Sequence record: NC_025447.1
Length of the DNA stretch: 64,000 nt
Strand: one strand, 5' to 3'
The translations under genes were made by a program, and so were the position numbers. The notes beneath the pieces are model-generated. The model saw only the letters and a program-made list of their open reading frames with translations, was not told the DNA's origin and did not search any database. Position 1 is the stretch's first letter, and every line of letters starts with the position of its first letter. Below, piece by piece: positions 3,613 through 64,000 of this stretch.

Positions 3613-3710
3613 TTATACCCTCCATTATAACCTTGTTAATATGTATATATTTAGTTTTATTATGCTGTTATCCAACAATTAATATGTTATTTGACAAAAG
3701 CAAATATAAT

Positions 3711-3750
3711 AAAAACCAGACTTATTTAGAACAAGTCTGGTTAATTTTTT
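3711..3750 (-). terminator. Intrinsic terminator after the 298-aa gene
   Basis: 10-bp stem AACCAGACTT/AAGTCTGGTT flanked by A and T tracts. Confidence 0.7.
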
Positions 3751-7934: not shown

Positions 7935-8044
7935 AATATTTCCCTTGTATGAGTTAATGTCATATACCAATATTTATCAGTACAAAATACATTTCGTTAT
8001 CATTAATAAATAAATGAAAGTTCACTACTAAAAGGGCTTAAACA

Positions 8045-8542
8045 ATGGCATTAAGATCAAAAGACTTTCTCTTCAGAAGAAAAACAAAAGATGGTTCATG
8101 GCAAGATTTTCCTGAATCTGATAGCTGGTATCCAGCTAACTTGGATTATCACTGGAATGAACAAACGTTACCACTAGCAAGTGGTGGCTACTATGGCTGT
8201 ACTACAGGTTTACATACGATTTCATTTACACTACGTAATTTTATTGGTAGAATTTATGTGTTAGCTACATTAGCTAGTAATCCTACTGATGATGATTGGT
8301 TTCCAATTAAATTCACTGAAAGTTGTAATTATTATCTTGAATTTACTGATATGGTTATTTTAAATCCAAATGGTGGGGATTTAATTAGACAACAAGGAAC
8401 TACCGGAACATTTGCTGAAACAGTAACTGGTAATTTTACTTACCTTAAAGTTGGTATAGACCGTGATTATATTAGTAAGTATCCATCAGATGTCCAAAAA
8501 AGTTTAGCTGGGAAGTTAGAACAAATTTTAATTAACTACTAA
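8045..8542 (+). CDS. Hypothetical (likely virion) protein, 165 aa
   Basis: Clean ORF with RBS, first of a tightly packed 3-gene + strand unit, ATAAATA upstream. Confidence 0.5.
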   Translation: MALRSKDFLFRRKTKDGSWQDFPESDSWYPANLDYHWNEQTLPLASGGYYGCTTGLHTISFTLRNFIGRIYVLATLASNPTDDDWFPIKFTESCNYYLEFTDMVILNPNGGDLIRQQGTTGTFAETVTGNFTYLKVGIDRDYISKYPSDVQKSLAGKLEQILINY

Positions 8543-8551
8543 GGATTAGAA

Positions 8552-9160
8552 ATGAAATTAGAAACAGAACAACCAAAACTATTTGTTAAAGGTCATGTCC
8601 TAATTACTGACGTTACTGATCCATCAAATCAAAAAATCGTTTTAGATAAATCTAACGCTATTCACCCTGAAAATATGAGTACTGCCATTGCTAATGCGTT
8701 AGCATATAATCAAGACAGTACTGGTATTCCTATTGGTTCTATTAGCGAGATGCGTTTTGGTAATGGTGGTACAGTAGTTTTAAGTACTGGGCGTGTTACT
8801 TATAAAAAACCACGTGTTACATCATTTGGTGGTTTGTATTCACAAACATATTTGAAAAAAATCAACCCAAGAATTACGGCTGGTATCGATTCACAATATA
8901 ATAATATTACGACTGTTCATATACCAGGTCAGTCCTATACTGATATTGTATGTATTTGTACTTTAGGCTTAGGTGAACCATCAGATCAAGGTGTGAGTTC
9001 AGGGACAAGCATGGACGGAACATATGTGTTTGATGAATTGGGATTATACACCGATGGTGATAGTGGTATTCCTTTAACACATATTATTTTCCACCCAGTT
9101 GAAAAAAGTGCAAACCGTGTTTTGCAAATTAAATACACTGTGCGTGTACAACTACAATAA
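8552..9160 (+). CDS. Putative baseplate/tail-fibre attachment protein
   Basis: FDELGLY...THIIFHPVEKSANRVLQIKYTVRV pattern recalled from myovirus tail-associated proteins. Confidence 0.45.
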   Translation: MKLETEQPKLFVKGHVLITDVTDPSNQKIVLDKSNAIHPENMSTAIANALAYNQDSTGIPIGSISEMRFGNGGTVVLSTGRVTYKKPRVTSFGGLYSQTYLKKINPRITAGIDSQYNNITTVHIPGQSYTDIVCICTLGLGEPSDQGVSSGTSMDGTYVFDELGLYTDGDSGIPLTHIIFHPVEKSANRVLQIKYTVRVQLQ

Positions 9161-9172
9161 TGGGGTCATATA

Positions 9173-10273
9173 ATGAGTGTTAACTATACAATTTATCGAA
9201 GTAATGGTAGTGTTTATGCTACCATTCCAAATAACGTTATTTTAGGTCCAAATCAGCCAGGTAGTAACCCAGTTCCATTAAATTTAGTTGGTAGAAACAA
9301 AGTAAGTTATGGTCAAGCATGGAATGAAAACTTTTTACATTTAGTTGAAAACTTCAGTTCAGCTTCAGCACCACGTGGTAACGTAAATGGTCAACTTTGG
9401 TATCGAAATACTGGAAGTACTGGTGAGTTATTAATATCATTAGTGGATAATGCTAGACAACCAGCAGATATGGTAAGTGAAGCGGAATGGGCTTCTATTC
9501 CAATGATAACCGTATTCAACACTGTACCAGATGGTGAAAACAGTGTTATGGGTCGTATGGTATTAACCAGCAATGGTGATTCACTTCGTGTTTTGATGAA
9601 AAACAAAGAATGGCGTGAAATTCAAACATCTCGACCAGAAAACAAAGAATATACATCATTATTAGATATTAACTATGATAATGGAAAAAAATACATAGAG
9701 TTTACACAAAGTAACAGTACTAAACCAATTGCGTATTTTAACTTAGGCGGTACTTCACAAGTAGATACAAATAACTGGACAACATTAACTAATGGTACTG
9801 GTGTATTTGAATTTGGTAGCAACTATTTCTATGAATTAAAAATTATGATTAGAGAAGTAAATGATTCTTCTGGTGAGATAGTTTCTCTTCCATATAATTC
9901 AAAAACCTTTTTTATAAAAGGGCAATTCTATGTAGATAATCAAGGAACTTTTGTTCCTGGTTCGGTTGGGGCAAGTCAAATGCCAGACCCACGTAGGATT
10001 ACACAATTAGAATCCATAAAAGATGTTATTACCAGTAGTCGCCCAAACTGGGACGTAAATATTGTTATTAATGGTGTAGATCCATCTATCCCAAATCCTA
10101 ATGGAACATCTAAAGCTGATTATGAAAATTGGGTTATCAATTCTCTAAACTCAAATAAAAATTTAGGTTTTCGAGTTGATGGTAGCATTAGTAATCTAAC
10201 TGCTGGTGAATCCGTTAAACTACAAGCATCCGTGTTGTTAAATATTACAGGTATTCCGATTATTGGAGTATAA
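9173..10273 (+). CDS. Putative baseplate/short-fibre structural protein
   Basis: LVGRNKVSYGQAWNENFLHLVENFS...AP...GQLWY motif recalled from large-myovirus virion proteins. Confidence 0.45.
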   Translation: MSVNYTIYRSNGSVYATIPNNVILGPNQPGSNPVPLNLVGRNKVSYGQAWNENFLHLVENFSSASAPRGNVNGQLWYRNTGSTGELLISLVDNARQPADMVSEAEWASIPMITVFNTVPDGENSVMGRMVLTSNGDSLRVLMKNKEWREIQTSRPENKEYTSLLDINYDNGKKYIEFTQSNSTKPIAYFNLGGTSQVDTNNWTTLTNGTGVFEFGSNYFYELKIMIREVNDSSGEIVSLPYNSKTFFIKGQFYVDNQGTFVPGSVGASQMPDPRRITQLESIKDVITSSRPNWDVNIVINGVDPSIPNPNGTSKADYENWVINSLNSNKNLGFRVDGSISNLTAGESVKLQASVLLNITGIPIIGV

Positions 10274-10300
10274 AAAAAGGAGCCATGTGGCTCCTTTTTG
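10271..10300. terminator. Bidirectional intrinsic terminator
   Basis: AAAAAAAGGAGCC-ATGT-GGCTCCTTTTT between convergent genes. Confidence 0.85.
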
Positions 10301-10302
10301 TT

Positions 10303-10767
10303 TTAATATCTATATGGTAAACTGTTGACAAACTGTGTACCTTCACGTATACTTTCCCATAGTGAGTAAAAATCTTTCATTAAGTTTGTGTTAAGTAAAG
10401 TATTTTTAGCACCAGGGTGTAATGGTTTAGGCCAAGAACCAATTCTAACCCAAGCATAACCAGAGCTTTCATGATTTAAAGTTGGTACAAATTCATTCTC
10501 AACTACAATAACAAATGAATAATATTTAAATTTACCATTTTTTGTACAAAATACATCAAACGGTATAATATCAATAATGTTAGGTATTGAGTTGCCCAAC
10601 TCTTCTTTAATTTCTCGCATCAGACCTTGTAGTGGTGTTTCGTTATGTTCAAGCTTTCCACCAACAAATGCCCAGTTGTTAGAATAGGTACTTCTTTCAG
10701 AACGCAAGTTTAACATCATATGTCCAGTACTTTTTGATAAAAATATAGCACCAACCGCTTCATTCAT
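10303..10767 (-). CDS. NUDIX hydrolase
   Basis: Nudix box GGKLEHNETPLQGLMREIKEELG. Confidence 0.9.
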   Translation of the reverse strand: MNEAVGAIFLSKSTGHMMLNLRSERSTYSNNWAFVGGKLEHNETPLQGLMREIKEELGNSIPNIIDIIPFDVFCTKNGKFKYYSFVIVVENEFVPTLNHESSGYAWVRIGSWPKPLHPGAKNTLLNTNLMKDFYSLWESIREGTQFVNSLPYRY

Positions 10768-10780
10768 AACAACACCTCCT

Positions 10781-12124
10781 TTATTTGTCAGTGAAAGTTA
10801 TTTTCCAATATCCCTGACGATACACAGGCATGATACTTTTATGCCATTTAAATTTGTCATTATATCTATAATAACCATTGTCTTCTTTATTATAAATGTA
10901 ATTTCGTACAGTAGATGGATCAATTAATTGTGCACCATCATTTGTAATTTTAAACAAATAATTTGATGGGATTTCGGTTTCTTTATAAATGATGTTATGT
11001 ATACTGTTATTTACATAATATTGTTCAGGTAATGCACTTGAAAGTACTGAATCTTTCTGCACAAACCCATGTATAGTGTAATCAACAGTATAATTGGTAT
11101 TATCAAGCTGTACTATAATTTTGTTGGCATCTTCATTTTCACCATACGACGCTATATGACCTTTTAGTGGGTTGTCTTCTTCAATAGATTGTTGAAATTT
11201 AATCCCTACTTTTTTGTCATCAAAATTTGGTTCTAGATATTTAAGATATTTTTCCCATGAATATATTCCACCGTTGGGAGAAACCGCAGATAGCGATTGG
11301 CTAACCAAGGTAAGTTGGTATGTATCAGGTAAATTATACTTGGAATTAGTAATTTCTTCAACTTTAATGCATAAATTCTTGGGTGTAAAAACATCTGTTA
11401 TTATATCTGAATAATTTCCCATTTCAAAATCAAATTCGTCACGAGCACCTTTAATATTTGTAGTAATCTGTTGGATTAATTTTGGTTTTTCAACAATAGC
11501 TGGTAAAGAAAACCATATTGTCGTTTCAAATGTTAAAACCATTATATCCAAATCTGGGTCAGTTCCTTGTGGAAAACCACGAGTAGAAAACTGACAATCT
11601 ATTAGTTCAACATCACTAAGCGATGTCCAATCTAACGGGTTATCAGATAATTGAAGTTGTATACTAGGTGCAAACAAAGTTGAGATTTGTTCGAATAATT
11701 CCATTTTAGTTTGAGTTTGAGTTACCCAAATATTCAAATCAAACGTAAAAGTCCAAGGTACTGGGTTATGTCTTACAATTTTGTATTGTGTGTCAAGATC
11801 TTTTGTGTACTCATTAATAGCAGGGGACTTGTTAGACCCCATTACTATAGTTTCGTTGGCATTAGAACGAATATTTTTACGATCCAACTTTAGTTGATTA
11901 ACACTTATGGTCATTATAGGTGCTGATGGGAGAACATTTTCACTATTCCCATTTATAATTGCTGCTGCCATTCTTGAAATATCGGCATAGCGACATGGAA
12001 CCTTTTTGTATTTTGGGTTTCCATTAGCATCAATACCATTTTGTACTTGAAATTCACCAAAAACTCTGATAAGATGTTTCAGTACTCTGCGAAATTGACC
12101 GTCATAATAATAATCTATTTTCAT
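10781..12124 (-). CDS. gp15: T4 gp15-like tail sheath stabiliser/terminator, C-terminally extended
   Basis: YYYDGQFRRVLKHL...KVPCRYAD and PVPWTFTFDLNIW motifs; adjacent to gp14-like gene. Confidence 0.7.
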   Translation of the reverse strand: MKIDYYYDGQFRRVLKHLIRVFGEFQVQNGIDANGNPKYKKVPCRYADISRMAAAIINGNSENVLPSAPIMTISVNQLKLDRKNIRSNANETIVMGSNKSPAINEYTKDLDTQYKIVRHNPVPWTFTFDLNIWVTQTQTKMELFEQISTLFAPSIQLQLSDNPLDWTSLSDVELIDCQFSTRGFPQGTDPDLDIMVLTFETTIWFSLPAIVEKPKLIQQITTNIKGARDEFDFEMGNYSDIITDVFTPKNLCIKVEEITNSKYNLPDTYQLTLVSQSLSAVSPNGGIYSWEKYLKYLEPNFDDKKVGIKFQQSIEEDNPLKGHIASYGENEDANKIIVQLDNTNYTVDYTIHGFVQKDSVLSSALPEQYYVNNSIHNIIYKETEIPSNYLFKITNDGAQLIDPSTVRNYIYNKEDNGYYRYNDKFKWHKSIMPVYRQGYWKITFTDK

Positions 12125-13626
12125 TCTGTGTCCTTATGTATGCGATAAACAGTATTAGGTTTAACTGCGTCATGTAATGGAACTTTGTTATCACTATTTA
12201 CAAACTGTGTAAGTGCTAAGTCTGCACCTTCCCACGGTTTTCTTCCACCATAATCAAAAATAACCCATGAATTCTTAGTTGCATTGAATTCCCATAACGT
12301 AACTGGAGTATAATCGGTGCGATAGAAATAGTCACCATCTACTGCATCAGTTGGGAACATATTTCCTTCAGGGACTGTACCTCGTGCTGGTGGAATTTTA
12401 GGACGATAATCTTGTTGCGAATCAATATTACCATATACACAATTGGACGTGAATGGTTCATTGACATAAGTTACCTTTGGTTCCCCCCACTTGTCATCAT
12501 TATACTGATAAATGTGTGGTTCTTTATAAAAAATACAAAAATCTTCCACATCTTCTGGTGGAACATCACTGGTAGTATATTCTACATCACAATTTAACCA
12601 TTTTTTAGCACTTTTATCATATTGATACAACGTATAACCTGTCACATCTGCGTCATTTTCTTTAAAGAAGAAGTCACCATCCATTGGTTTTCTGGGAAAG
12701 ATGGTTCCACGCTTGACTTCCACAGAAATCCATGTATCATTAACAAACTCTTTGAGTACTGGGTATGTTTTTTTCAAAAAATACATTCCATCGGCAGGTT
12801 CTTCTGGAAAATCATAACCGTTAAGCATATATTTTGATAAATCTACTGTATCAGGTCGATCATCATACAAATGTTCATTTGTATAATGAATATAGGGTAC
12901 TTCATCATCAGCTTGCATGATGATACGGTTCATGATATCCATTTCATTGCCATAGTTACTGTTTTCCGACGAACCATCATCGGTATTTCCATTACCATTA
13001 TTAGGGTCATCTGGATTATCAGGATAATTATTGTTACCGAGTAAATCGGAGTACTCAGGTGAGTCGGTTAGCGGTTTAACTCTAAGTTTATAAATGTGAT
13101 GTTGCCACGTAACCGAGTATCCCTCAGATGTACGAAATGCATCTTGGACGACATAGAAGCGGTTTAGACCTGTATCTTTACCCAATACATCAAAATCACG
13201 TAAATTTGGTAGTTCTATCACATCCCCTGGCATGATTTTTCTACCTAAACGCTGCATCATTGTATTATAATGGATTGTGATGTCCATAGTGTTGAAATTA
13301 AAGAACAATCCTGGGATTTTCAAGTCTGGAGTTGCTTCTTGAACTTGATAGACACAACTAAGTGTGATAGCTTCAAGGTTGTAGTTTCTGTTTGGTGTGT
13401 CACCAAAAATTAAATCGCCAATACTTGACACAACTGATCCTGAAGATGTATAATCACCTCCATAGGATAAGTCAGTGTTGTCAGCAACTTGTTTTGGACC
13501 GACATATGCATAAAGCCACATGTCAACTCCACCAATGTTGTATTGTTCAGCAATGGCAGAATCAATGAACTTGTAATCATTGGTTCTACCTTTTTTCCAC
13601 ATTCTATATGTCATGATTGTCTCCAA
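12121..13626 (-). CDS. gp14: T4 gp14-like neck protein with repetitive C-terminal extension
   Basis: ITIHYNTMMQRLGRKIMPGDVIELP motif; overlaps the gp15-like start by 4 bp. Confidence 0.6.
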   Translation of the reverse strand: METIMTYRMWKKGRTNDYKFIDSAIAEQYNIGGVDMWLYAYVGPKQVADNTDLSYGGDYTSSGSVVSSIGDLIFGDTPNRNYNLEAITLSCVYQVQEATPDLKIPGLFFNFNTMDITIHYNTMMQRLGRKIMPGDVIELPNLRDFDVLGKDTGLNRFYVVQDAFRTSEGYSVTWQHHIYKLRVKPLTDSPEYSDLLGNNNYPDNPDDPNNGNGNTDDGSSENSNYGNEMDIMNRIIMQADDEVPYIHYTNEHLYDDRPDTVDLSKYMLNGYDFPEEPADGMYFLKKTYPVLKEFVNDTWISVEVKRGTIFPRKPMDGDFFFKENDADVTGYTLYQYDKSAKKWLNCDVEYTTSDVPPEDVEDFCIFYKEPHIYQYNDDKWGEPKVTYVNEPFTSNCVYGNIDSQQDYRPKIPPARGTVPEGNMFPTDAVDGDYFYRTDYTPVTLWEFNATKNSWVIFDYGGRKPWEGADLALTQFVNSDNKVPLHDAVKPNTVYRIHKDTE

Positions 13627-13657
13627 AATAAATCGGGTATATCTTTATTTACCTTGT

Positions 13658-13684
13658 AGACAAACCGTAAGAATGTGATATAAT
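13658..13684 (+). promoter_or_regulatory. RGACAA-N15-TATAAT promoter (ClpA)
   Basis: AGACAA 13658-63, TG-A-TATAAT with the hexamer at 13679-84. Confidence 0.65.
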
Positions 13685-13724
13685 GTTTATTAATTAGAGT
13701 GACGTGAATCACATAGGAGAATAC

Positions 13725-16013
13725 ATGAATCTTACTCAATTGTTCAAAAAAAGCGACGAACTGGCAACATCTCTAGGTCATACATTCTTGACTATTGACC
13801 ACGTAAGTGCCACAGTACTGACTATTGATAGCATCAAGAACGTATTTGAAGATATGAACATTGATGCAGACAAACTGCACAACCGCCTGATGAACTATCT
13901 TAAAAATACAACAGTTCCACATGCACCAAAAAGTGTTAAAGATGAAGACGCGAATCGAACTTCACTTCTAGTGAATCGCGTTGTACATGAGCTTTCTAAA
14001 AAATCAGTCATTGAACAACTAAAAAGTGATGATTTTTCGATTGATGCATATTTTGTTCTATTCGAATGTCTGTCTTTCCCTAACACAGCACTAGAAGCTG
14101 CGTTAAAAGAAGAAGGTGTTAGCTGTACTGAAGCTGCACGTGCATTACAGAAACACGTTGAGTCACTTGATAAGGGTATCAACTTACAAAGTATTAATGA
14201 CGAACCGATTGGAGATAAAAAAGTGGCCCAACAGCAGCAATCATCTAAACAAAAAGGTTTGGAAGACTATACAACGAATCTAACTGCTCTTGCAAAAGAA
14301 GGCAAACTAGATCCTATGATTGGTCGCCAGAAAGAATTGTCTGCATTGATTGAGACTCTTGCTCGCAAAACCAAAAAGAATGCTATTCTCACTGGTGAAG
14401 CTGGTGTAGGTAAAACACAAATCATCGACGGGCTTGCACAAGCTATTGCTGATGGTAACGTACCTGAACACCTGAAAGACGTTGAAATTCTTTCACTAAA
14501 TGTTGGTGCATTGACTGCTGGTACTAAGTATCGTGGTGAATTTGAAGAACGCATCGACAATTTGCTAAAAGAACTAAAGAAACGTGAAAATACTATTGTT
14601 TTCATTGATGAAATTCATATTATGGTTGGGGCTGGTTCCGCAAGTAATGGTTCTATGGACATGAGCAATATGCTTAAGCCAGCACTTTCACGTGGTGAGA
14701 TTCGTGTAATTGGTGCAACAACATATGATGAATATCGTAAAAATATCGAGAAAGATAGTGCATTAACTCGTCGTTTTATGAAAATTGACGTAGTTGAGCC
14801 GACAATTGATGAAACTCGTGCAATTGTTAATGGTTTGAAACCAACGTATGAAAAATTCCATAATGTTGAGTTCACATCTGATGCAATGGATGCTGTAATT
14901 TCTCTCAGTGATAAATTCCTGAAGAATAAGCACTTCCCAGATAAAGCAATTGATCTAATGGATGCTGCTGCGGCTAAAGTTCGTTCACGTGACAACAATA
15001 GTAAGCTAATTACTGCCAATTTGATTCAAGAAGTTGTTGCTGGTATTGCCAATTTGGATATCAACGTGGTTGCATGTACTGAAAGTGATCGTATGCGTAA
15101 TCTACCAGATGCACTACGCTCACGTGTATACGGTCAAGAGGAAGCTATTCAAAAATTAGTTGATAACGTGATGGTAGCTCGTGCAGGACTGCGTGACAAA
15201 TCTAGTGTTCAGGGTGCATTTATGTTTGTTGGACCATCTGGTACTGGTAAAACAGAAATTACCAAAGCATTAGCAGACGCAACTGGTGCGGAACTCATTC
15301 GCTTTGATATGTCAGAATTTTCTCAAGAACATACTGTTTCTAAACTAATTGGTTCACCTCCAGGTTATGTTGGTCATGATTCTGGTAACGGTTTACTGTT
15401 GGATAAAATTGAGCAGTTCCCTAATGCAGTACTGTTACTTGATGAAATTGAAAAAGCAGATCGTAAAGTACTACTAACCTTCCTACAGGTTTTGGATGAA
15501 GGTCGTCTGACTGGTTCTCAAGGTAAAACTGTATATTTTAATAACGTAACTGTTATTATGACTACAAACCTTGGTGCGGCTGATTCAACAAAGCGTAGCA
15601 TTGGTATGAGCGGTAGTGACACTGCACAGGACAAGGCAATTAAAGCATTCTTGCCACCAGAGTTTATTAACCGTATTGATAGTATCGTTACGTTTAAAGA
15701 CCTAAGCAGTGAAGCTATTGACAGCATCATTGATAAGTTCATGGGTGGTTTGAATGAACAAGTCAAAGACCGTAATGTTAAAGTTACATTAACAAAAGCT
15801 GCACGTGAATGGCTTGCGAAAAATGGGGTAAAAGTTGGTATGGGTGCACGTCCAATGAAACGTACCATTGAACAAAACATTCGTGTGCCACTAGCTAAAG
15901 AAATGTTGTGTGGTTCACTTGTGAATGGTGGTAACATTACATTTGATGTTATTGATGGTAAAATCGGTATTAAGCCGAAACGTACCAAAGCTGTAGATAA
16001 AGCACTAGTATAA
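13725..16013 (+). CDS. clpA: ClpA-like Hsp100 AAA+ ATPase
   Basis: Clp N-domain, two Walker A motifs ([16 protein letters not shown]), FIDEIH and [25 protein letters not shown]. No ClpB middle coiled coil. AGGAG RBS favours ATG 13725. Confidence 0.92.
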
Positions 16014-16050
16014 AAAAAGAAAAGGAGAGCATAATGCTCTCCTTTTTTTA
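16011..16050. terminator. Bidirectional intrinsic terminator
   Basis: AAAAGGAGAGC-ATAAT-GCTCTCCTTTTTTT. Confidence 0.85.
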
Positions 16051-19000
16051 TTACTTAACTAATAATATATTTTTAATATCATTACCACTAACTTGTAGAC
16101 TATCAGTGTATACTGAAAGATCTATAGTGTAACTATTTTGTGTGTAACGTTTTAACATATCATAATTACCTAAATTAATTCCATTGAAAGAATATGTAGT
16201 ATTAAGTTTAAAATCATGTTCTGCACTATACATTACACCACGGAGTAAATTATTTGCATTTCTAACTTCAACTTTTTCATATCCAATCGATATAATATCA
16301 TTCATGTTTGCGGCTGAACCGGATAAAACATTATTTCTAATACTATAAGGACTTATTGATTTAGGTTGAGAAACATAGGTTGTATTTTCTTCACTAATGG
16401 TTGTGATGTTAGTAACAGTACCACCAACAACACCGATATACATACCGTCAACCATTGGGAATCCATAAACCCATATCCCTTCATTATTTCTAAACGGTTG
16501 AATAACACTTGAATCATATTCGATAACGTTGATTTCTAAACTATCAGTCATTTTAGTTCTTGCCAATTCACTAAGAACTCCCGCACCCGTAATTGGTAAG
16601 TTATAACCGTTATCGATAGTAATTCCATCAACATCAAATATTTCATTAGAGATTATCCAAACGTCAACGTCATCTGGTGTTATTCCGTCATTGTACTTAC
16701 CACCATTTAAAGTAGTATCGTAGAAAACATCATAATTAATTACATCAATGGTGTAATTTCTATTTTGTTCATACAATTTAATACCATTCTTGACAAATTC
16801 AGGGTCAGCAAATGTTCTAACACGAACAATGTTCAATGCTAGAGGCTGTACTGGCTCATTTTGTTGTGCAAGAGTGATGTTATCATAACGGAGAACTGCA
16901 CCAGTACTCTCATCAATCAATTCAATCGTTTCCTTACCTGTATTTCTTACAGTGAATAGGATCGGAGTTGTATTGTTTTTGATGTTAGATACACGCAAGA
17001 TTGTTTCCCATGTGTGATTTTGATATCTCACAAAATCTTCACCATCAGGAGTGAAAATCATCACCTTATCACCATCAGATAGGTCATTGTCAACTATTTC
17101 TGCTTCAGTTAAGCTATTAATAGATCTCACACGATAGAAATATTTTTCATCAAACTTCGATGTTGTTTTATTAATATCATTTTCAATCTTAGCATATGAA
17201 GGAATACTTACAATTGCTTCTGTATGTTTATATGGATTGATAATTGCCATACCTTCAGTTTGATATCTGCTGTTATCACGTAATTGTACAAGAGATACAT
17301 TGTCAAACCCATATCCATCAACTGTAAATCTAATTTGACCTACATCACGCCCAGAAGGGTTTATGTCAGATATATCCACAATATAAGGATCAACTTCATC
17401 ATCTTTAACTTCCCATTTTATTGAAGAAGTTTGAGATTCCAATGCTAGGTTATCAAATGCATTCATATCATTGAAGTACTTAGCTTCAGTAATACTATCA
17501 AGTATATATTGATAATCAGAATACATTGGATTATTTTGATCTAGTGGTAAATCATCAAGATTTATTTCAGCTAGTTCAACCATTTCACCATTTGTGATAA
17601 AATAATCTTCCATGAAATCATCAATACTTTGTTCATCAGGTATACTTTGATATACACCGTTAACATTTAAGTAAACATATTTTCGTGGAATCATTGTAAT
17701 TGCATAGATATCAATTGGGGTCTTACTAAGAATCTCTTCAGCTTTTTCGTACTTATCAGTAGCGTCTTTGTCGAATAACCCTCTCATACCTGCTAATACG
17801 TGAATAGCATCAGTATAGAAACGGGTATCACCACCTACTTCATCATAACGATAAACATATACACCATACTCAACTTCAAGTTTAACTTTTACTTCATAGT
17901 CTGATGCGTCAGGATTTTTATCTTTAATTAATGAAATGTATTTTTGATACAATTCACTGCTTATTTCAAAATATCCATAGTTATAATCATTACTAGAAGA
18001 AAAGCCTAATGGAAGTCTAGTACTAGGATTGTCATTATAAGTAAGTCCACTAAATCCACATCCAACTTCATCGTGAATTTTCTCATCACTTATATCTTTA
18101 TAAAGTTTCAAACGGTTTGCCAATGTGTTATACTGAACATATTGTCTAAGGTCAGTAAACATATCGTTATGCGTTGATTCTTTATAAACACGTTCCAATG
18201 TAGCAGTGAATTCATCAGTTGCTTCTAAATCTTCCGCATGGTCTTTATACCACTGGTTAACGCCATATGCTGTTCCTAGTGTTACATCCAATTCTGGATA
18301 GTAGATTTGCATTTGATAAGCAATAAGAAGATCGAAAGTTTCTTCACTATATTCTGGGAAAGAATATATATAACGTTGTAATTCATAGTTACTAACAGCA
18401 TCCTTTTCATTGGATTGATATTTGTTATTAACACTTACTAATTCATTTATGCTTGCCAAATCTTCATTTGGTTTACACTGAATATTATCATAATGCATAA
18501 TAATATCAATTTCTTGGAATCTTCTATTTGGTGTAACGAAATCACTTGGTAGTGAACCTACCTGTTCCCATTTTTGGGTAATTTCATTAAATTGAGCGTA
18601 CTCATAATCCCAAATATCTTTTTCAGTTTTGATCCAAGAACCGTCAACGAAAATATATCCATTAGGATCTAAATCATTACATAGACCTTTTATTAAATCA
18701 TCATCAGATGTCTTTTGCTCTATTTGTGAACGAATTTTAGTTCTATAAGGTTTAACTTCTTCAAAATATTCAACAATTTGATTAATCAAATTATCGTTTG
18801 AATAGTTTTGAACTAATGATTGTTCCAAACCAACAATATAGATATATGATGTTTTAAATACCCAATCCACAACACTTTGTTCAACATGTACATATTTGAC
18901 CATATCAAAAACAATTTCGCTTTGATGTAAATCGAAAGAATTTTTGAGTAAAGCTAGTGCTTTACGAACGTTGATTTCACGATTGCTTAGTGATCCATTA

Positions 19001-22000
19001 TCATTATGAACACTATAATCTGCGTAAAGCATATCATTGAGTTCAACTGTACTGTTTTCACGACCAATCGCTTTCCAATAAATTGAATCGCGTGATTGTG
19101 ATTTAATATACAATGTCCAAATGTTTTCACTATCGGTAACTCTGATAATATCGCCAACTTGGTAGTTTTTAGTATTAGCATCTTCTAAGCTTGACTCTTG
19201 TGTATAAGTCGTGTTACTATCATACCCAACATCATACCAATCAGCATATGACCAGTACTGAGTCATGTCCAATGAAGTTCCCAGTGATTCAACATAATCA
19301 GATTGTTTAATCATTTTATGTTGACCCTCACCTTTGTTCTCTAACGTTATAGTAACAACACTACCCGCGTTTGCTGGACTATTCATTAACTGAATATATC
19401 CATTTTCGTCGAAGTGAATAAAATAAACAGCACTAGAAGTTAATGGATTTGGTAGATATCCACTAGTACTTAAAATAACAGCGTCATTTTCTTTAAATTT
19501 ATCACTTTCAACTGCAATAACTAATTCATTATTGTAAGACAATACACGGAAAGAAACTTCATTCGGATTAACTTCAGTGGTTTTAACATTAAACACATCT
19601 TCCATAACAACACTATTAGTGGTTATGTTTTGTGACCTATAATAATTATTAGCACTTTCTACAAAGTTTCTACGAGCTTCTATAACATTTTGGAACCAAG
19701 TTTTGTTTGAACCTAAACCGTTATCAACATCTGGATATAATAAATTAATCACAGAACCTGATTCAGTTGTTTCTTGACCAATTAGTGAGTTCCACATTGA
19801 ATCCCAAATTAGTGGGTTAAAGTTATAGCTGTCACCTTCTTTACATAGTTGATACTGGTCATGTTTAACAACTTCAGTACTATCCATGTAATAAGAAACA
19901 GTTAAAATACTGGTATCATCATTCACTTTAAATTGCATATTACTAAGAATAAACGAGTTTTCATTGATTGGAGCGAACCAAGGAATGTTTAGCTGTGTTG
20001 GATCTTTAATAATACGAGCAATGTCAGTACATGATTTTGTTCTGGTATGTAGTGGTGGTACATAAATTGTATCACGTACCCAGAAATAGTATTTTGTCAC
20101 ATAACTATCAGTTGAACTATCATATTCCAAAAATGTACTATAATTATCTTCAAGTGCAGTTCCACTTGGTAGATACATAGTATTATTTTTGTTTTTCTTA
20201 GCAACATCTTTACAGTATTTGTCCCAGTTATATGGCTCAACTGGTGAACAAACCCACTCTAACACATCAATTGTACTATGTGGTAATAAACGACCCCAGT
20301 TGTAACGTTTGTATTCATTGGTTGCATCAATATCAACATTACCGTCTGCGTCATAAATTGCACGAGTATAATCCAAATAAAATGCAGTGCTAGTGTTCCA
20401 CCATACTTGACCAACTTTATCAGCACCCCAAGCCTGGATTAACTCTCCATTACTATTATACTGTGCAGGATCAACTGGTGAAGTATATGTTACGTTTTGC
20501 ATAGCCGCACCTGGAATAACACCATTAATTGGGTCATAAACGTTTAGATATAGCTCAGTAATGTTAGTACGTTCATCATATGTCGTTGGACGATCAAATA
20601 AAGTACTTTGTGGTGCTTTAAAACTATATTTCTTGTCAATGTAAGCTTGACGTTCATCAGTACTGGCAAAACGTGATACATAACGATACAAACGTGGACG
20701 TGTATCTGGATCAGTAAATTCAATATCAATAGAAGTGTCAAATGGAACTACCATAACTTTAGGATCAGAACCAGCAGTATAATATTGACTTTCTACTGTT
20801 AAAGTATCTGGCATAAAGTTAGTTTCATCAACAAAATAATAATAATCACCATCTTCAAGTGGTACATTATCAGTTAAAGTTACTTTACAAAATTGTTCAG
20901 CATACACATCGGTATTTTCAATAGGTGTTATAGAAACCATTTGCACATTAGTATCAACCAATTCAAAAATGTTCCACAAACCATTACCGTCTTTAAACAT
21001 CCACACAGATTCAGGATTTTCACCTTTACCATTAGTATAAGTTATGCGGTCATTATATGCAGTACTGAAATCTTTTGTTGTGTACGATACTTCATCCAAT
21101 GTTACTGGACCAATATCTGGAAGTTGGATGTTTTCACTTCTTCCACTACGCATTGGGAATGAGAACTTACCATTTGGACGTGTAATCCAACGAGGATCTT
21201 TACCCTGCTCACCGAAGTATACAATATGATTACCATTACCATTTGAAGTTGCATTTACATCAAAAGAAACCATTTGAGGTTGTTGTTTAAATTGGTCATT
21301 GATTAGTTTAAATTGAAGGTTTTTCTTACCATCAATATTACCATATGTACCAATTTTAAATGCCCATTCTTGTAATGCTTTATATTCATCAGTGTCATAT
21401 GATTTAGAAACACGAAGTACACGTTCTAAAACTTGGTTAGTACCTTTATCGTGAATGAATCCTTTATAGAAATCAACACGACTAACATCACTGCTAATCA
21501 TACGCTGTAGATAATCACGAGATTGATAACCAATCAAATGGTTTGACAACTCTTGTAATTGTACATCACTTACTGGAGTTTCACTATCATAATAATGTTG
21601 GAAATCCGACACTAATTTTTCAAATGATGGTAGTGTTCCAGCTTCCAAGATAATAAATCCAGGAGCTTGTAGGCGACCAGTCCATGAACCAGTAATATAT
21701 CCATACATTTTAATTAGTTCTTGAATAGAACCATATGTTGGCTGATAAATGTAATCACCAAAAATAGTTTTATCATCAAAAATAACAGCATGTTCATATG
21801 AACACAAACTTAAACGAATCAATGCAATGCGTTTATTAGATTCTAAAGTTCTAACAGTGAAGATATTTCCAATACGAGAAGTTTCAATTTCATATTGGCG
21901 AATACCTTGGTTATTATCATCAAGTAATGACCATACACCACCATTATTTTGCGTAATAGATTGTACTGAACCAAAGTCTGCCCCAAATTTAGCGTTTGCA

Positions 22001-25000
22001 GCACTTGGGGTACAAGAAATAAATTCACCAGTTACTAGAGAATTCTGACTCCAGATCACGAAATCTTTAGCAATAGTGTTCCAATCTTGTTGAGCACCAC
22101 TATCATTTACATCTTCAAAAATCCAACCATGTTCTTTAAGATATTCACCATATCCACAAATAAAAGTATAAACTTCTTGGTAACTATTGAAAACTTTACC
22201 ATATTCAATTGAAGCTTCAGACTTCCATTCATTATAATGAACAACATTACGGTTTTCCAATTTAAGAGTTACTTTTCTACCATTTTTTACGGGAAGTTTA
22301 TATTTAAATTTAGCACCAACTAGATCATATCCATCAATCTGATATGCACTACCATTCCAAGTAATTTTGATCGCACTCATTTGCTCATCACGGATATTAT
22401 TAGAACGAACAAGACCAATGGTTTGGTTTTCTTGTGAAATAAGACCGAAAGATTTAGCATTGAATGTTAGCTGATCTGCTTTAGTAAATCCTCCAATTTT
22501 ATGACCAACATTTATATAAGAAGAACGAACTACATCCCCATACTTGGTGGTAATATTTTTATTTTGATACATCAAATGGTCACTTACAAACATTTGATAA
22601 CCAATTGTTCTTGTGCTATTTTCACCATGAACTACTGTATTTTTATCAAAATTAATACGCTTACGTGTATCACCATAAAGGAATTGTGAACCATCAGTGA
22701 ATACTTCTTTTAAGTTATCATTGCGGGTATCCCAGAAATAGTTAGCAAATTGTGCTGGTTTAGCTTTATACAAAAGCATCATTTGGTCATATGCAAACAA
22801 TGTAGTGTTCATGTATGTAAATTCCATGTCACCCATATCACCATATGTCCAAGGTTCTGCTCTATGATTTAAAGATCCAGACACTAAACCTAAAATTTCA
22901 GGTGCAATATATTCAACCACACAAATATCAATACCAGAAGATGTTTTATTTCCAGTTTTTGTAATTTTGAATGGCTGTACACCAAATCTTTTATATTTGT
23001 CATATTGACCACGACGATCACCAAATAAAATAGTTCCAGTACTGCTATCGCCAATAGTTCCGTCAATATCCCAAAGACCACTAGGAACTAAATCACCTTG
23101 CTCATTCATAACAAGTGCTTCATATACATATACAACATCACTATCACGTTCACCAACTTGAACAGCCGTTGGTTCGTATTCTTGGTTCCACCAAGTTGGA
23201 CGTTGTGTAAAGCCAAACATTTCCCACGGATGGGTAGCTGGGCGATATGTACCATATTGGTCAGTGTAAATGGCACGCCATGAACCACGTGCAGGAATTT
23301 CAGTACTTTGACCATTAACTACATAATAAGTGCCAGTATAGTTCCAAGTTCTCCAATTGTTAGGATCATAATCATGTGTACTATTACTGATACCATTAGT
23401 TGCGGTGAAGTTAATGTATCCACGTAGTAATAATGTTTGTTTCTCTTCAGCACTATATTCAGTTTTAGTGAAATATGGTGTAGGGAAAAGGTCATCACTA
23501 TTCAATACTGGTACGTAATCAACATCTTTGAATTTATTATCAATACTATTAAAAATTCTATTTTCTAATTCATATACAACATCATCCATTTTATCAACAC
23601 CATTGATAACACGGTATGCTTTGGAAATAATACCAGTATGACTGATGTTATAACAGCTTGGTTTACTACCAGCAGTGAGGAATGTCGCTTTTTCTGGTAC
23701 ATATGCTTGAAGAATACCTAAGAACTGTGGTGTTGGTGGTATAAATGCACGAATGAATCCAGAAGTACTTCCAACATTATCATAATAGAATGGGAATGAA
23801 CTATCACGTCCCATATTAATAGTAGTTAAAATTGCATCAACAATGTTTGCAGCACTATTTTGTAAAAAGTCTGATGGATTTTCATCATACATACGAAGCA
23901 TTTGTGTATTAAATTTATTAATGAATCTAAAATATTCAGATTGCATAAACATAGTTGCTTCAAATAAATCAATATCTTCATTTGCAGTATGTGCCATCAA
24001 TGGAAGCATAGATGCTTCATTTTGGATAATTTTAGTACCTACGCCATTATTAACCAATCCTTTAGCCAAACGTTCTTCATAGTCATTGAAATCATCAGAA
24101 GAACCACGTGTAATGTTCTTTTGAATAATATCCTGAAAATGTAAAGTGTAGTCACCTTGGTTAATGTATATAATATTGGAATTGTATGGGTTATTTTGTA
24201 AGTTAATTGGAACTTCATATGCACCTAATTCTTTATTAGGAGTTACAGTACTGCTATAAGTTCTAATTTGAATAACTGAATCTTCATCCAAATCTACAGT
24301 GCTATCTAAGGTGATACTTTGAACTTGACCTTTTGATACATTTTTGGTATATTTTGATACATCAACACCATCAACAACAACTTCAATTATGTCAGAATCA
24401 TTATCTAAAACTTTTTGTGCTAATTCGAATGTGTGGTCATATTTTACAATCTGAACACCATCACCAGTGATTGGATGCCAGTCTAGATAAGTTTCGCGGT
24501 CTGCTTTATAGTACTGATAGGTTCTATCAACTTCAATAACATATGCATACATACCATCAACTGGTTCTTTAAAAACTTCCATATCATAAACAGTACTGAA
24601 TACACGATACATATCAGTACGTTTGACTTGTGGAGTTTGTTTTACAAATTGTTTAGAGTACTCTTCTGAACGAACCCAATCGGTTTGAAGATTCATTTCA
24701 TTATTTTCATCAATAATGTTATAATAGTATAAACCATCAATTTCAACTTCTTTTCCAAGATGGTCATAGGTATAACGTTGGGATTGTAAAAAGTTTTCAT
24801 AAATGTAATAATTATAATCACCAAGTTCAATGTTATATCCATATACACTATCAGTTGCATAGTTGTAATTTATTTTAAAACCAAACAACTCTGAACCTTT
24901 AAAGTTACTGGATGGATATGTAGTACTGTTGTCAAGTTTGATACCATTACGATCATAAAGTTGGAATTTAGGGAATATGTTAACACTAGTTTTTGATTGT

Positions 25001-37321: not shown

Positions 37322-37368
37322 CTTTTTGATTCTCCATAATAAGGGAACATTTGATGTATTTATACGTG

Positions 37369-37395
37369 GGACAAAATGCTTTTTGGTGCTATAAT
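37369..37395 (+). promoter_or_regulatory. RGACAA-N15-TATAAT promoter (gp55-47-46)
   Basis: GGACAA 37369-74, TG-C-TATAAT with the hexamer at 37390-95. Confidence 0.65.
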
Positions 37396-41466: not shown

Positions 41467-41475
41467 TTAAAGATA

Positions 41476-41500
41476 AAGGGAGCCTTAGCTCCCTTTTTTT
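41476..41500. terminator. Bidirectional terminator
   Basis: AAAGGGAGC-CTTA-GCTCCCTTTTTTT. Confidence 0.8.
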
Positions 41501-41976
41501 ATATCAACCATATTTAATTTACCGTCCTTAATCAGCTTTCTAGCTTGCTTTACACGAGCAGTAGTGTTACTACCAGGGACAACTCCTAACCCTTCCAGAA
41601 TCGCGTTTTGCTGTGTTGCTGGAAGCCTTTTAAACTTATTAACATCCACAGTTAGTGCAGTGTGATGTATAACTTGTTCATCGTCAGGAATGCTGTTATT
41701 ACGCTCTAAGTAATCAGCAAGATTTCTGAGTACCTCATATAATGGTTTATCAGTTAAGTGCTTCATATATCGATTGAAGCTGTTTTGTACCTTTCCTTCC
41801 CAAGCATTGACTTCATTTTGAAGAACTTGTCTACAATGTTGGTTTCCATAGTGGTAGTGATCCAGTACTGGTTTAGTTATTGGTTCTTTAATTATAGGAT
41901 CTATTCCATTTTGTTTCTTTAGTAATTCGTTTCGATAGTTTGCAGCATCCTTACTATCTTTTAATCTTTTTTTCAT
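41485..41976 (-). CDS. Recombination endonuclease VII-like (gp49 family) nuclease
   Basis: QNGIDP...VLDHYH...RQVL...NAWEGK aligns with T4 QNGKC...LDHDH...RGLL...NAAEG; TATAAATA upstream at 42007-14 (minus). Confidence 0.65.
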   Translation of the reverse strand: MKKRLKDSKDAANYRNELLKKQNGIDPIIKEPITKPVLDHYHYGNQHCRQVLQNEVNAWEGKVQNSFNRYMKHLTDKPLYEVLRNLADYLERNNSIPDDEQVIHHTALTVDVNKFKRLPATQQNAILEGLGVVPGSNTTARVKQARKLIKDGKLNMVDIKKGS

Positions 41977-42069
41977 AATTCCTCACCAAACTATTTGTTA
42001 TCAAAATATTTATAGATTAGTTATTTGCAATATTTTAAGTACTTAATGAATATTTTTATAAAAATAGTG

Positions 42070-42096
42070 AGACAACTTTAAAGTTTGTGCTATAAT
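42070..42096 (+). promoter_or_regulatory. RGACAA-N15-TATAAT promoter firing into an ORF-free region
   Basis: AGACAA 42070-75, TG-C-TATAAT with the hexamer at 42091-96, A-rich upstream. Confidence 0.65.
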
Positions 42097-42102
42097 GTTT
42101 GT

Positions 42103-42586
42103 TGTAGTAATGACAATCCTGTTGAATGCAGAAATGCATATAAATTAGAACCTGATCCTATCGAAAATGTAGATGGCAGATGAGCAGTTCAACAGTGCGA
42201 TGAGCAAAAGAAACCCGTTAGATGTGGGCATAGTTTGAACCCCTCACGGCAATGCGGCTCAATAAAGAACTCCGATAAGCATACAGAGAGTTCCTCGATA
42301 GACATATAAGGATCGCACCTTACCAGATTTGCTAAGGGAGTTTATTAAGTGATTTTAATAAACAGCCTGAAGTTTGATTGTATAGACTTTCAGGTGAGTG
42401 TCAGGATGATTAAGACTGACGACCGTTGCACATGACTGCGATAGAGAGAAACAGAGCAACCCGCTTTCGTTCTTAATATATTTTTAAGAAATTCGCAATA
42501 CAATAAATGCTGAAACCATCAGCGTCAAGAAATAGAGACTTCATTGTCTCTTTTTTATTGTCTTCATTCCCCTGCGGGGGGATGAA
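42103..42586 (+). ncRNA. Candidate large structured non-coding RNA of unknown family
   Basis: No ORF >=60 aa, higher GC than flanks, about a dozen visible helices including long-range ones, GAAA tetraloop, terminator-like hairpin with T tract (see findings). Confidence 0.6.
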
Positions 42587-42812
42587 AATGTCCTCAACAA
42601 ATCCCGTCAAGTATTAAATCTTTTAAAGTTCTTTATAATTAATTTAATTAAATGAATATGAGTTACGTAGTAACGAATATTCTTCAGCTAACGAATGAAA
42701 TGAGTTAGATGAATCCAATAATATTAAAATTAATCCTTTCATAATTCAATTCAAATAATTCTGTAGTTTAAAACCAAAAAAAACCAGCAACAATGTGCTG
42801 GCTATATGAAAA

Positions 42813-43022
42813 TTAGTGCTTCTCGTTTTGTTTTTTAATTTTTTTATTAAAAGACTTAACTAATAAGTCTCTATCTATTAATGGCATATTAAGGAGTGTT
42901 CCATAGTCAATGTTATCCATATATACAGAACATTCCATTAGTGCATTTTTGATTTCTGACTTATTCAGTTCTATCTCCTTCAGTACTTCTTGTATTTCTT
43001 CAGGAGATGACTGGAGAAGCAT
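42813..43022 (-). CDS. gp51-like baseplate hub assembly protein
   Basis: Small ORF coupled to gp26; YMDNIDYGTLLNMPLIDR resembles gp51-family pattern. Confidence 0.5.
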   Translation of the reverse strand: MLLQSSPEEIQEVLKEIELNKSEIKNALMECSVYMDNIDYGTLLNMPLIDRDLLVKSFNKKIKKQNEKH

Positions 43023-43858
43023 TACTCGAAAAAATGACTAGGATCATATTTTAGTCCATCAATTTCCCATTGATGATTACATCCATCACATTCTACTTCC
43101 ATACTATGTGATACTCCAATTTCAAGTACTTCATCCATTTTTTCACGAATTAGTTTAAGTACTCCCTTCGATTGTTGTCCAAGCCATTCATTAATAAATT
43201 CTTTTTCAACTACTTCATCACCATCTGGTGTTATAATTTTTGCAATAACTCCACCGATCATGTCGAAGTTAAGTTGAGCCATGTTTTCAAATACTTCAGA
43301 AAATATTTTTACTTTTTCATCTTTATCAATATCAGCAGTTTCAAGAAACTTAGTCTTCTGTTGCTCACTGAACATGCGTTCAGCAAACGATGAATATTCT
43401 TTCCATGTCAGTGGTCTAAATTCTAAACGGAGTCCATTATCTAAATCAATTGATGGGATTTCTTCAAATGCTTGTGCAGTTTCAAGAAGATATGATAGAT
43501 TACGCTCAAATCGACCTTCTTTTTCACATTCAGGACATACAACGTTAATATCATATGTTTCTTCTTTAGAAGCAACTTTAATAGCAATAAGAAGCATTTC
43601 AACGTCATTTACATACAACTCATCAGCGTCAATTACATTAGGAACACAGTTTTCAATAACACGGGATACTGCATCTCCGTTTAGTAACATATCGGGGGTA
43701 TTAAGTGTCATTTCATCACGTGCACTACGTGCACAAACTCCACATTTGACACCTTTTGGACCTAGAACTCCTTCTTTATAAGGAATAACGCCGTTTGTAA
43801 CTAACTTAGTACTGATCTCTTCAATTTTAGTGTACTTAGCAAGTGGATTCATAGCCAT
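43022..43858 (-). CDS. gp26: gp26-like baseplate hub subunit
   Basis: NPLAKY...ARDEMTLNTPDMLLNGDAV...DVEMLLIAIKVAS, CPEC, CDGC; TATAAATA at 43893-43900 (minus). Confidence 0.75.
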   Translation of the reverse strand: MAMNPLAKYTKIEEISTKLVTNGVIPYKEGVLGPKGVKCGVCARSARDEMTLNTPDMLLNGDAVSRVIENCVPNVIDADELYVNDVEMLLIAIKVASKEETYDINVVCPECEKEGRFERNLSYLLETAQAFEEIPSIDLDNGLRLEFRPLTWKEYSSFAERMFSEQQKTKFLETADIDKDEKVKIFSEVFENMAQLNFDMIGGVIAKIITPDGDEVVEKEFINEWLGQQSKGVLKLIREKMDEVLEIGVSHSMEVECDGCNHQWEIDGLKYDPSHFFE

Positions 43859-63833: not shown

Positions 63834-64000
63834 GAAAATCTCCTTGTCAAATTTTGTGCAGGTATATCCTGCTTAAAGTTATTTATCAAAAAATATCACT
63901 AGCATTTAAATTTACTGAGATATTTAATGAATTTCTATGATATTATTTATCAAATCTGGGAAAGTGATTCAAGATGTGCTATAATTATCAATGAAAATCA

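Follow-up and report, generated by a model that had tools for sequence, protein, structure and literature searches.

A probable new family of large pseudoknotted RNAs in jumbo phages and prophages of Enterobacterales

Large and intricate RNAs are rare in bacteria and phages, and RNase P, the group I and group II introns, OLE, ROOL and GOLLD each brought unexpected biology. ROOL RNAs (RF03087) are carried by phages and prophages, measure about 500-650 nucleotides (nt), contain many helices and several pseudoknots and have no dedicated protein neighbour (PMC12286853). The kissing pairs of GOLLD (RF01998), which were found by covariation, are intermolecular bridges of a 14-mer cage, and the hosts of the two families come from cow-rumen and marine samples, Lactobacillales and Mycobacterium (PMC12286853). 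Here we analyse a window of 64,000 nt, the final 64 kb of the record of Escherichia phage 121Q (NC_025447.1; Asteriusvirus, a Rak2-like jumbo myovirus of 348.5 kb). A large non-coding RNA had been proposed in this window from the letters alone, which we refer to as the original prediction. Window positions 42050-42620 correspond to 326582-327152 of the genome with 100% identity; all positions refer to the window unless stated otherwise. We conclude that the element is very probably a structured non-coding RNA gene of a new, previously undescribed family of large pseudoknotted Enterobacterales phage RNAs.

The RNA gene sits on the + strand in a gap of 836 nt (41977-42812). As had been claimed, this is the only genuine stretch of at least 250 nt in the window that is free of open reading frames (ORFs), and its GC content exceeds that of its surroundings: 40.2% for the RNA body compared to 20.5% and 22.9% for the flanks and 34.6% for the window. 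A second apparent gap (2222-2938) lies inside a tail-fibre gene that runs off the start of the window, and ARAGORN reported no tRNA and no tmRNA in the window. Taken as a whole, the original observation on the gap was partly confirmed. It had overlooked four crossing interactions, a 3' tail that extends to about 42685 and the fact that the element is one of four paralogs.

Covariation, strand and structure

Two of the checks that the original prediction had named concern the fold, and both spoke in its favour. When we compared the folding energy with dinucleotide shuffles, the + strand beat 100 out of 100 (minimum free energy -114.9 kcal/mol, z = -2.85; z = -1.88 for the - strand). The search for compensatory changes among homologues revealed abundant covariation. 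RNAalifold on 31 members returned 74 pairs, of which 45 showed compensatory double changes. As RNAalifold is blind to crossing pairs, we also scanned an alignment of 60 sequences over all column pairs for stacked covarying runs. This custom scan regained P1, H11, H7 and all of the crossing pairs (Table 1), which RNAalifold had missed. The final model of the window copy (copy 1) has 129 pairs.

We then contrasted a curated structure of 103 pairs with randomised versions on alignment A1. For the curated structure 87.3% of the cells were paired, compared to 74.5% after shuffling (none of 500 shuffles reached the observed value) and 38-45% with slid partners. Both sides changed in 72 of the pairs, whereas 42.9 +/- 2.9 were found after shuffling and 21-29 with slid partners. 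The covariation score was 0.368 compared to 0.146 and at most 0.135, respectively. Across the 60 non-redundant members we observed canonical combinations in 4,638 of the 4,770 cells of 84 proposed pairs (97.2%). In the same set G-U and U-G together were seen 356 times and A-C and C-A 33 times, a ratio of about 11:1. This excess of G-U over A-C indicates selection on an RNA of the + strand, which is the strand of the promoter.

At least four interactions cross: P1 with H3, the K1 kiss, the pseudoknot of H11 and H13, and the 7-bp PK1, which ranked as the second-best helix in the unbiased covariation scan. The apparent loop of H3 is the 3' strand of P1, hence the crossing, and this 5' domain spans 42119..42198. 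The core 3' domain (42425..42497) is the block most conserved in sequence (CGACCGUUGC ... AUAGAGAGAAACAGAGCAACCCGCUUUCG). The PK1 core differs between the four paralogs of 121Q (UUGUA/UACAA, UUGCA/UGCAA, UCAUA/UAUGA and UCGAA/UUCGA), as is expected under neutral compensation. We dropped a set of long-range closing pairs between UGA (42181-83) and UCA that RNAalifold had suggested: all positions are invariant, there are two equivalent partners and a Serratia variant breaks the pairing.

The helices that had been read by hand for the original prediction were judged by covariation in the 60 family members. Eleven of them stood up to this and four failed. Covariation supports CTGTTGAA/TTCAACAG (P1), TGAGC/GCTCA, GAACTC/GAGTTC, GTTTATTAA/TTAATAAAC, CCTGAA..TTCAGG, GTCAG/CTGAC, GTTGC/GCAAC, TTCTTAA/TTAAGAA and the stem of the terminator AGAGAC/GTCTCT with its T tract. 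The nearly invariant CCGT/ACGG is likewise supported, and the apical hairpin that follows CTGTTGAA is present family-wide with a variable sequence. For the 10-bp hairpin at 42563-86 the support is limited to the inner C4/G5 part. Other pairings did not hold. GTGCGAT/ATCGCAC, which was thought to close a multibranch domain, is merely 33-84% canonical, and GCTGA/TCAGC drops to 13-36% at three positions. CCTTA/TAAGG (42318/42333) is broken by variation with C-A mismatches, and CCUUA pairs with UAAGG at 42307-11 instead. The proposed pairing of the two ends (GACAAT/ATTGTC) places its partner within the variable terminator hairpin. The broader claim of a large structured phage RNA with a probable function is supported by conservation and covariation.

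Family members, coding potential and known families

The genome of 121Q contains exactly four full-length copies of the element (E 1e-110 to 1e-140). All four lie on the + strand, in separate ORF-free gaps. These paralogs are mutually about 70-80% identical. The orthologs of each locus cluster together across genera, which points to an old duplication. Distant blastn matched 71 phage records, which without exception are Rak2-like jumbo phages, at 4-5 places per genome and with identities down to 70%. The hosts of these phages are Escherichia, Salmonella, Klebsiella, Erwinia, Serratia, Yersinia, Pectobacterium, Cronobacter and 'Xanthomonas'. RaK2 has diverged full-length copies that are syntenic with copies 2 and 3 of 121Q. 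Across genera and paralogs the RNA element is 65-75% identical and the flanking sequence is unconserved. We also noted that one RNA copy lies directly downstream of the phage sigma-70-like gene both in 121Q (genome positions 90232-90955) and in RaK2 (191264-192009), a placement that is kept across a deep split. At another locus gp416 of 121Q (193357-193968) and its homologs of about 175-205 amino acids (aa) always follow the copy-3-type RNA and precede a DNA methyltransferase gene; this arrangement is locus-specific and not family-wide. A 2-kb stretch without annotated genes in the early region of 121Q (135194-137161) is unrelated to the RNA family.

For a wider set we scanned IMG/VR, JGI metagenomes and GTDB genomes with exact patterns and screened the matches with a hidden Markov model (HMM) of the family. 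This brought the set to 97 full-length members, 77 of them non-identical; clustering gave 60 groups at an identity of 95% and 22 groups at 75%. Many metagenome contigs carry members. So do nine bacterial contigs, namely Serratia fonticola (a complete chromosome), Serratia sp., Citrobacter amalonaticus, Enterobacter chinensis, Silvania, Buttiauxella, two Enterobacteriaceae and a short contig labelled Clostridium. Pfam scans of the neighbours gave a recurring prophage order of host gene, integrase, RNA and CI-like S24 repressor. The integrase was a large serine recombinase in 5 cases and a tyrosine integrase in 2, and in several prophages the RNA gene is aimed at the 3' end of a convergent cI. 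In S. fonticola (stretch 61-4278) the end of the island by rof/tilS holds a serine recombinase, two ParB/RepB-like genes and the RNA on the opposite strand, the sole inverted context of RNA and integrase. Among 5,426 complete E. coli genomes two carry the RNA, on an island inserted beside ffs, and PGAP has no feature at its position. None of the cultured temperate phages among 50,697 phage records carries the RNA, and only jumbo phages match there. Distant blastn against the 72,556 plasmids of PLSDB gave no match.

A search for a protein partner, in which we clustered 429 neighbouring ORFs, returned only locus-specific synteny groups and the integrase and CI genes. Similarly, the prophage neighbours had no counterpart in 121Q when its entire genome was searched by tblastn. 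We rejected a role as guide or bridge RNA of an adjacent recombinase, as the RNA has serine integrases for neighbours in some cases and tyrosine integrases in others, and occurs at jumbo phage loci with no integrase annotated or found nearby.

The statement that the RNA matches no known family was borne out. The covariance models of Rfam 15 gave no match at the gathering threshold in the 64-kb window or on the RNA in 11 other family loci. The families that failed this threshold include ROOL, GOLLD, tmRNA, RNase P, group I and II introns, 6S, OLE, HEARO, raiA and riboswitches. When we allowed E values up to 10 on 41900-42950, the only matches were terminator-like or chance matches to small RNAs, and none of them rose above noise in the RNA body. 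None of the 4,227 Rfam 15 models matched, which bears on ARRPOF and GEBRO only as far as these motifs are in the library. The element is also undescribed in the literature we consulted on jumbo phages, CBB, Sharanji, PA5oct and phage structured RNAs and in a genome-language-model preprint.

We found no conserved ORF in the family. Median lengths of the longest ORF are 36 aa (+ strand) and 57 aa (- strand), and codon periodicity is absent (column entropy by phase 0.85, 0.74 and 0.84). Coding sequences for a 'hypothetical protein' are annotated over members in SHEFM2K, E9.1, JP4, the SD-series, Hallingskeid and fHe-Yen9-04 (g347/g348). In 121Q gp516 is annotated over copy 4, in RaK2 ORF245 covers the RaK2 copy, and the record of UE-S1 lists a 'repeat_region'. 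The short coding sequences annotated over family members in dozens of GenBank records show no conservation as reading frames and are probably errors of annotation. The gene-like anatomy of the locus, its membership in a family, the structure, the strand and the absence from known families are all shown by the data.

Promoter, transcript and 3' region

A promoter pointing into the gap had been proposed, and we recovered it as an extended -10 promoter (TGAGAC-17 nt-TGcTATAAT at 42068-96). In jumbo and temperate members alike the family promoter reads (A)TGAAAC or TGGGAC, 17-18 nt, and TGnTATAAT or TATACT, and the conserved region starts at the -35 box. Promoters described as 'divergent RpoD-like' (a TGAAACG -35 with TATA) precede DNA-synthesis and gp55-like sigma genes in CBB and GAP32 (PMC5259590). 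The putative RNA promoter is of this same class. Within the window the class (TGGGAC/TGGGAA-N-TGcTATAAT) was also seen at 37367-37395 and 63957-63985. The site at 37367 lies just upstream of a gp55-like late sigma gene, which suggests that the RNA is co-regulated with middle-class genes. The promoter segment of the family HMM has weak matches at other intergenic sites of 121Q, for example before the SSB gene.

The intrinsic terminator is found in 34 of the 60 members and is missing from copies 2 and 3 of 121Q and from many temperate members. Conservation runs for about 130 nt beyond it, to about 42685. A read-through product of about 580 nt is predicted to end there. All members keep the same elements on this 3' side, namely box 1, the C4/G6 hairpin, box 2, an AT-rich spacer and the distal hairpin. 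The family form of the distal hairpin is GAAUUGA, a variable stem, an ACGnAGUGA loop, the other side of the stem and CGAAAAUUC. By a strict pattern we detected it in 38 of the 60 members, 13-113 nt after box 2 (mostly 18-66), where some of the matches are unfoldable and other members have variant forms. Compared to shuffles its folding showed a median z of -2.55. This hairpin is the probable end of the read-through transcript. A sarcin-ricin-like reading of it was dropped, as its 'AGUAC' is part of a covarying stem.

The two CGUCAAG boxes change in concert: we observed CGUCAA/CGUCAA, CGUCAG/CGUCAG, CGACAA/CGACAA (Serratia) and CUUCAA/CUUCAA (RaK2). The spacing between them is about 80 nt, or about 45 nt in the members that lack the terminator. 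As the changes are identical and not complementary, they suggest one shared partner. Candidate partners for the boxes within the RNA (CUGACG at 42416-21 and GAUGAG) are not conserved. The tail at 42612-42812 has a GC content of 23% and holds the distal hairpin as well as repeated ACGAAT/GAATGAAATGAG motifs at 42674-42710. At the far side of the gap an intrinsic terminator on the - strand (42782-42803) serves the small ORF at 42813-43022. The convergent genes for a gp46-like ATPase and endonuclease VII are separated by a bidirectional terminator, a GC-rich palindrome of 9 bp at 41475-41496 that is flanked by T-runs on either side.

Table 1. Features of the RNA gene, its flanks and its copies in 121Q (window positions; the four copies are given in genome positions).
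Feature	Position	Strand	Remarks
-35-like hexamer TGAGAC	42068..42073	+	17 nt upstream of the -10; conserved in 22/22 sequence clusters
Extended -10 TGcTATAAT	42088..42096	+	TATAAT/TATACT with upstream TG kept family-wide
Predicted transcription start	about 42103-42106	+	downstream of the extended -10
Predicted short transcript	42104..42557	+	about 455 nt, promoter to intrinsic terminator; ends predicted
P1	42119-27/42187-95	+	6-9 contiguous pairs; sequences differ in most members
Apical hairpin in P1	42128-37	+	variable sequence, present family-wide
P2	42152-62/42172-79	+	invariant loop GAAAAUGUA; 92-98% canonical, double changes
H3 (3 bp)	42184-86/42196-98	+	100% canonical; 42185-42197 UA 35 / AU 13 / CG 12
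H4	42201-05/42257-61	+	encloses H5; H4 and H5 100% canonical in 60; three H4 pairs covary
H5	42215-18/42246-49	+	within H4, with a variable insert and invariant GGCAAUGCGGC; domain 42201..42261
H6 hairpin	42267..42293	+	4-5 pair types per position
K1 kissing	42278-81 (H6 loop)/42330-33	+	42279-42332 GC 28 / UA 17 / AU 7; 42280-42331 CG 35 / AU 19
H7 hairpin UAAGG/CCUUA	42307-11/42318-22	+	42309-42320 AU 41 / GU 12 / GC 7
H8 expansion arm	42340..42363	+	85-100% canonical, many pair types; short here, 30-60-nt insertions in other members
H9 hairpin	42366..42394	+	7-nt loop 42377-83 enters PK1
PK1 (7 bp) AUUGUAU/AUACAAU	42377-83/42498-42504	+	7/7 positions 100% canonical in 60 sequences; double changes at 6
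H10 hairpin GUCAG/CUGAC	42400..42420	+	first three pairs 100% canonical, 4-5 pair types each
H11	42425-29/42456-60	+	crosses H13 (H-type pseudoknot); 97-100% canonical, compensatory changes
H12	42437-41/42493-97	+	encloses H13 and H14; 97-100% canonical, compensatory changes
H13	42444-48/42464-68	+	97-100% canonical, compensatory changes
H14 hairpin	42471-76/42484-89	+	inside H12
CGUCAAG box 1	42523..42529	+	near-invariant
Intrinsic terminator	42534..42557	+	6-bp stem (hairpin 42534-51), 6-nt loop, U6; stem covaries
C4/G6 hairpin 3' of terminator	42563..42586	+	inner 5 pairs 95-100% canonical, almost invariant, all members
CGUCAAG box 2	42605..42611	+	conserved in members
Distal hairpin	42654..42682	+	GAAUAU/AUAUUC around GUUAC-GUA-GUAAC; stems differ in sequence, stay complementary
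Endonuclease VII gene	41485-41976	-	one flank of the RNA gap
Small ORF (42813-43022) and baseplate hub	42813-43858	-	other flank of the RNA gap
121Q copy	90.3 kb	+	just after phage sigma-70-like factor gp167
121Q copy	192.8 kb	+	between gp415 and gp416
121Q copy	247.5 kb	+	between gp515 and gp517
121Q window copy	326.6 kb	+	between endonuclease VII and baseplate-hub side

Possible explanations and comparison with known systems

Several characteristics of the family together argue for an RNA that would act in trans and in quantity: a host-type promoter of its own in every case, 4-5 diverged copies per jumbo genome that are older than the genera, no common protein neighbour, and downstream genes that vary. 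In the explanation we favour, the sigma-70-type extended -10 promoter would fire at about 42104 and the transcript would fold into a compact multi-domain RNA held by the crossing interactions. It would stop at the weak intrinsic terminator or read through, past the C4/G6 hairpin, the second CGUCAAG box and the distal hairpin. The RNA would then act on its own or together with a conserved component of its Enterobacterales hosts, either as an RNA-only particle formed by self-assembly or by binding and sequestering such a component (as decoy, sponge or scaffold) to the phage's benefit. Transcript ends, abundance, action in trans and a binding partner are all parts that we infer. Our confidence in the two halves of this explanation differs: the identity as a new RNA family is very probable, as stated above, and the mechanism of a trans-acting scaffold or decoy is a tentative proposal. 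For the explanation as a whole, which is a compromise between the two, our confidence is moderate.

Some observations weigh against this explanation. The transcript ends, the abundance and the timing are inferred for every family member, and no evidence points to a binding partner. P1 and H3 can hardly both form fully at the same time and may be alternative states. The conserved sequence past the U-tract may act as DNA or belong to a separate transcript, and read on the - strand the CGUCAAG boxes are TTGACG, which resembles a -35 hexamer. The moron-like position in prophages would equally suit a role in host benefit or defence or in phage offence.

A more far-reaching version, which we consider unlikely, is a new RNA-only machine. 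This could be a self-assembling homo-oligomer in which PK1 and/or K1 link separate molecules. It could also be a ribozyme or a stoichiometric sponge directed against a component of host defence or translation. If PK1 acts in trans, the paralog-specific cores would keep four assemblies orthogonal. Such a machine would be supplied in four doses in the jumbo phages and as a moron in the temperate ones.

An alternative to an RNA acting in trans is a cis-acting sensor or leader, in which read-through at the internal terminator, into the 3' tail and beyond (into downstream genes for copies 2-4, or in convergence on the prophage cI), would be governed by the structured domain. A weak internal terminator followed by conserved sequence, the seemingly mutually exclusive P1 and H3, the orientation of the RNA gene towards the 3' end of cI in several prophages and a TTGAC -35 that often follows the distal hairpin would be in agreement with this. 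However, the four copies of 121Q are followed by different genes, those after the window copy lie on the opposite strand, and in prophages a convergent cI follows. Furthermore 26 of the 60 members have no terminator, known riboswitches are far smaller than a sensor of about 400 nt and four knots, and no aptamer family matched, so we regard the cis-acting sensor as improbable. Slightly more improbable still is a catalytic role, as a large ribozyme or similar RNA with a substrate in host or phage. About 100 nucleotides are invariant, largely in junctions and loops, the core is nested and double-pseudoknotted, and no obligatory protein partner was found. On the other hand, there is no likeness to any ribozyme family in Rfam, neither a substrate nor a cleavage site can be named, and the multi-copy, high-dose design fits a stoichiometric role better than catalysis.

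The ColE1 primer RNA II has a sigma-70 promoter of its own and a structured transcript of about 500 nt with a G-run that is able to hybridise to template C's. A primer of this type would form a persistent hybrid through the G6/C4 run and prime DNA synthesis at four dispersed origins of the 348-kb genome. The spread of the copies (about 90, 193, 247 and 327 kb), the promoter class common to replication genes, the invariant G6 run followed by an AT-rich stretch and a size near that of RNA II could all be read in this way. We nevertheless give a primer or origin very little weight: the RNA is absent from 72,556 plasmids, in prophages, which should have origins of their own, it is found once and next to an integrase, and priming would not need strong selection on tertiary pairs far from the 3' end. 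Nor is there a conserved antisense promoter of the RNA I type; promoter-like sites on the - strand are confined to the 3' half, and one candidate -10 falls in the covarying PK1 strand. The least probable of all is an element that acts at the DNA level, such as a protein-binding array or a repeat that is mobile and selfish, or a group of very small protein-coding genes. It would explain the repetition within the genome at non-syntenic places across genera, the direct CGTCAAG repeats that vary in concert and the records that annotate 'hypothetical protein (x3)' or 'repeat_region'. It is largely refuted by the strand-asymmetric covariation, since the 11:1 ratio of G-U to A-C reflects selection on one RNA strand. 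In addition the conserved region begins at the promoter, the short + strand ORFs are unconserved and lack codon periodicity, and the neighbours include no transposase, where terminal repeats were not specifically sought.

If an action on a host factor or a particle of the favoured kind were true, the family would show how giant phages use abundant RNAs and would open the role of RNAs of the ROOL/GOLLD type to genetics. Natural experiments are available in the four diverged paralogs per genome and in the combination of virulent and temperate carriers, and the deep covariation amounts to a testable contact map akin to a 3D structure. The minimum value of the analysis is the exposure of spurious 'hypothetical proteins' in dozens of GenBank records.

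Among jumbo phages, RNA-seq of the Rak2-related PA5oct defined four ORF-free long non-coding RNAs (lncRNAs; ncRNA001-004) of 236-619 nt, two of which each account for about 1-5% of the phage reads depending on the time point (PMC7318152). Phages of this kind thus do express abundant lncRNAs. As relatives of the new RNA ncRNA001 and ncRNA002 were rejected: nhmmer (--max, E up to 10) found no match in the region 7800-23000, which covers these two. The family and ColE1 RNA II have in common a sigma-70 promoter, a G-run and a transcript of about 500 nt that is rich in structure; the family differs in having no RNA I-type antisense gene and in residing in prophages and virulent phages and not at a plasmid origin.

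The closest parallels are to GOLLD and ROOL. Like the new RNA, GOLLD is a large ornate RNA of phages and prophages whose 3' region is highly conserved and whose 5' region is more variable, and its intermolecular kisses are a precedent of relevance to PK1 and K1. In contrast to GOLLD the new RNA is of smaller size, lacks a tRNA within or beside it, belongs to Enterobacterales hosts and gives no match to the covariance model. The likeness to ROOL extends to the carriers, the approximate size, the many helices with several pseudoknots and the lack of a dedicated protein neighbour. It differs from ROOL in sequence and structure, neither of which matches, and in its multiple copies in jumbo genomes. 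ROOL also often lies near tRNA islands, whereas the tRNAs of 121Q are found at 72.7-78.0 kb and the RNA copies at 90.3, 192.8, 247.5 and 326.6 kb. The original analogy with these RNAs is therefore apt as a description (phage-borne, large, multi-pseudoknotted) and not as a statement of membership. Judged by its predicted features, the new RNA resembles ROOL and GOLLD in kind (500-800 nt, multi-pseudoknotted, no dedicated protein) and is a member of neither. Unlike ROOL and GOLLD, it is carried by phages of E. coli K-12 and related bacteria, the hosts that are easiest to work with.

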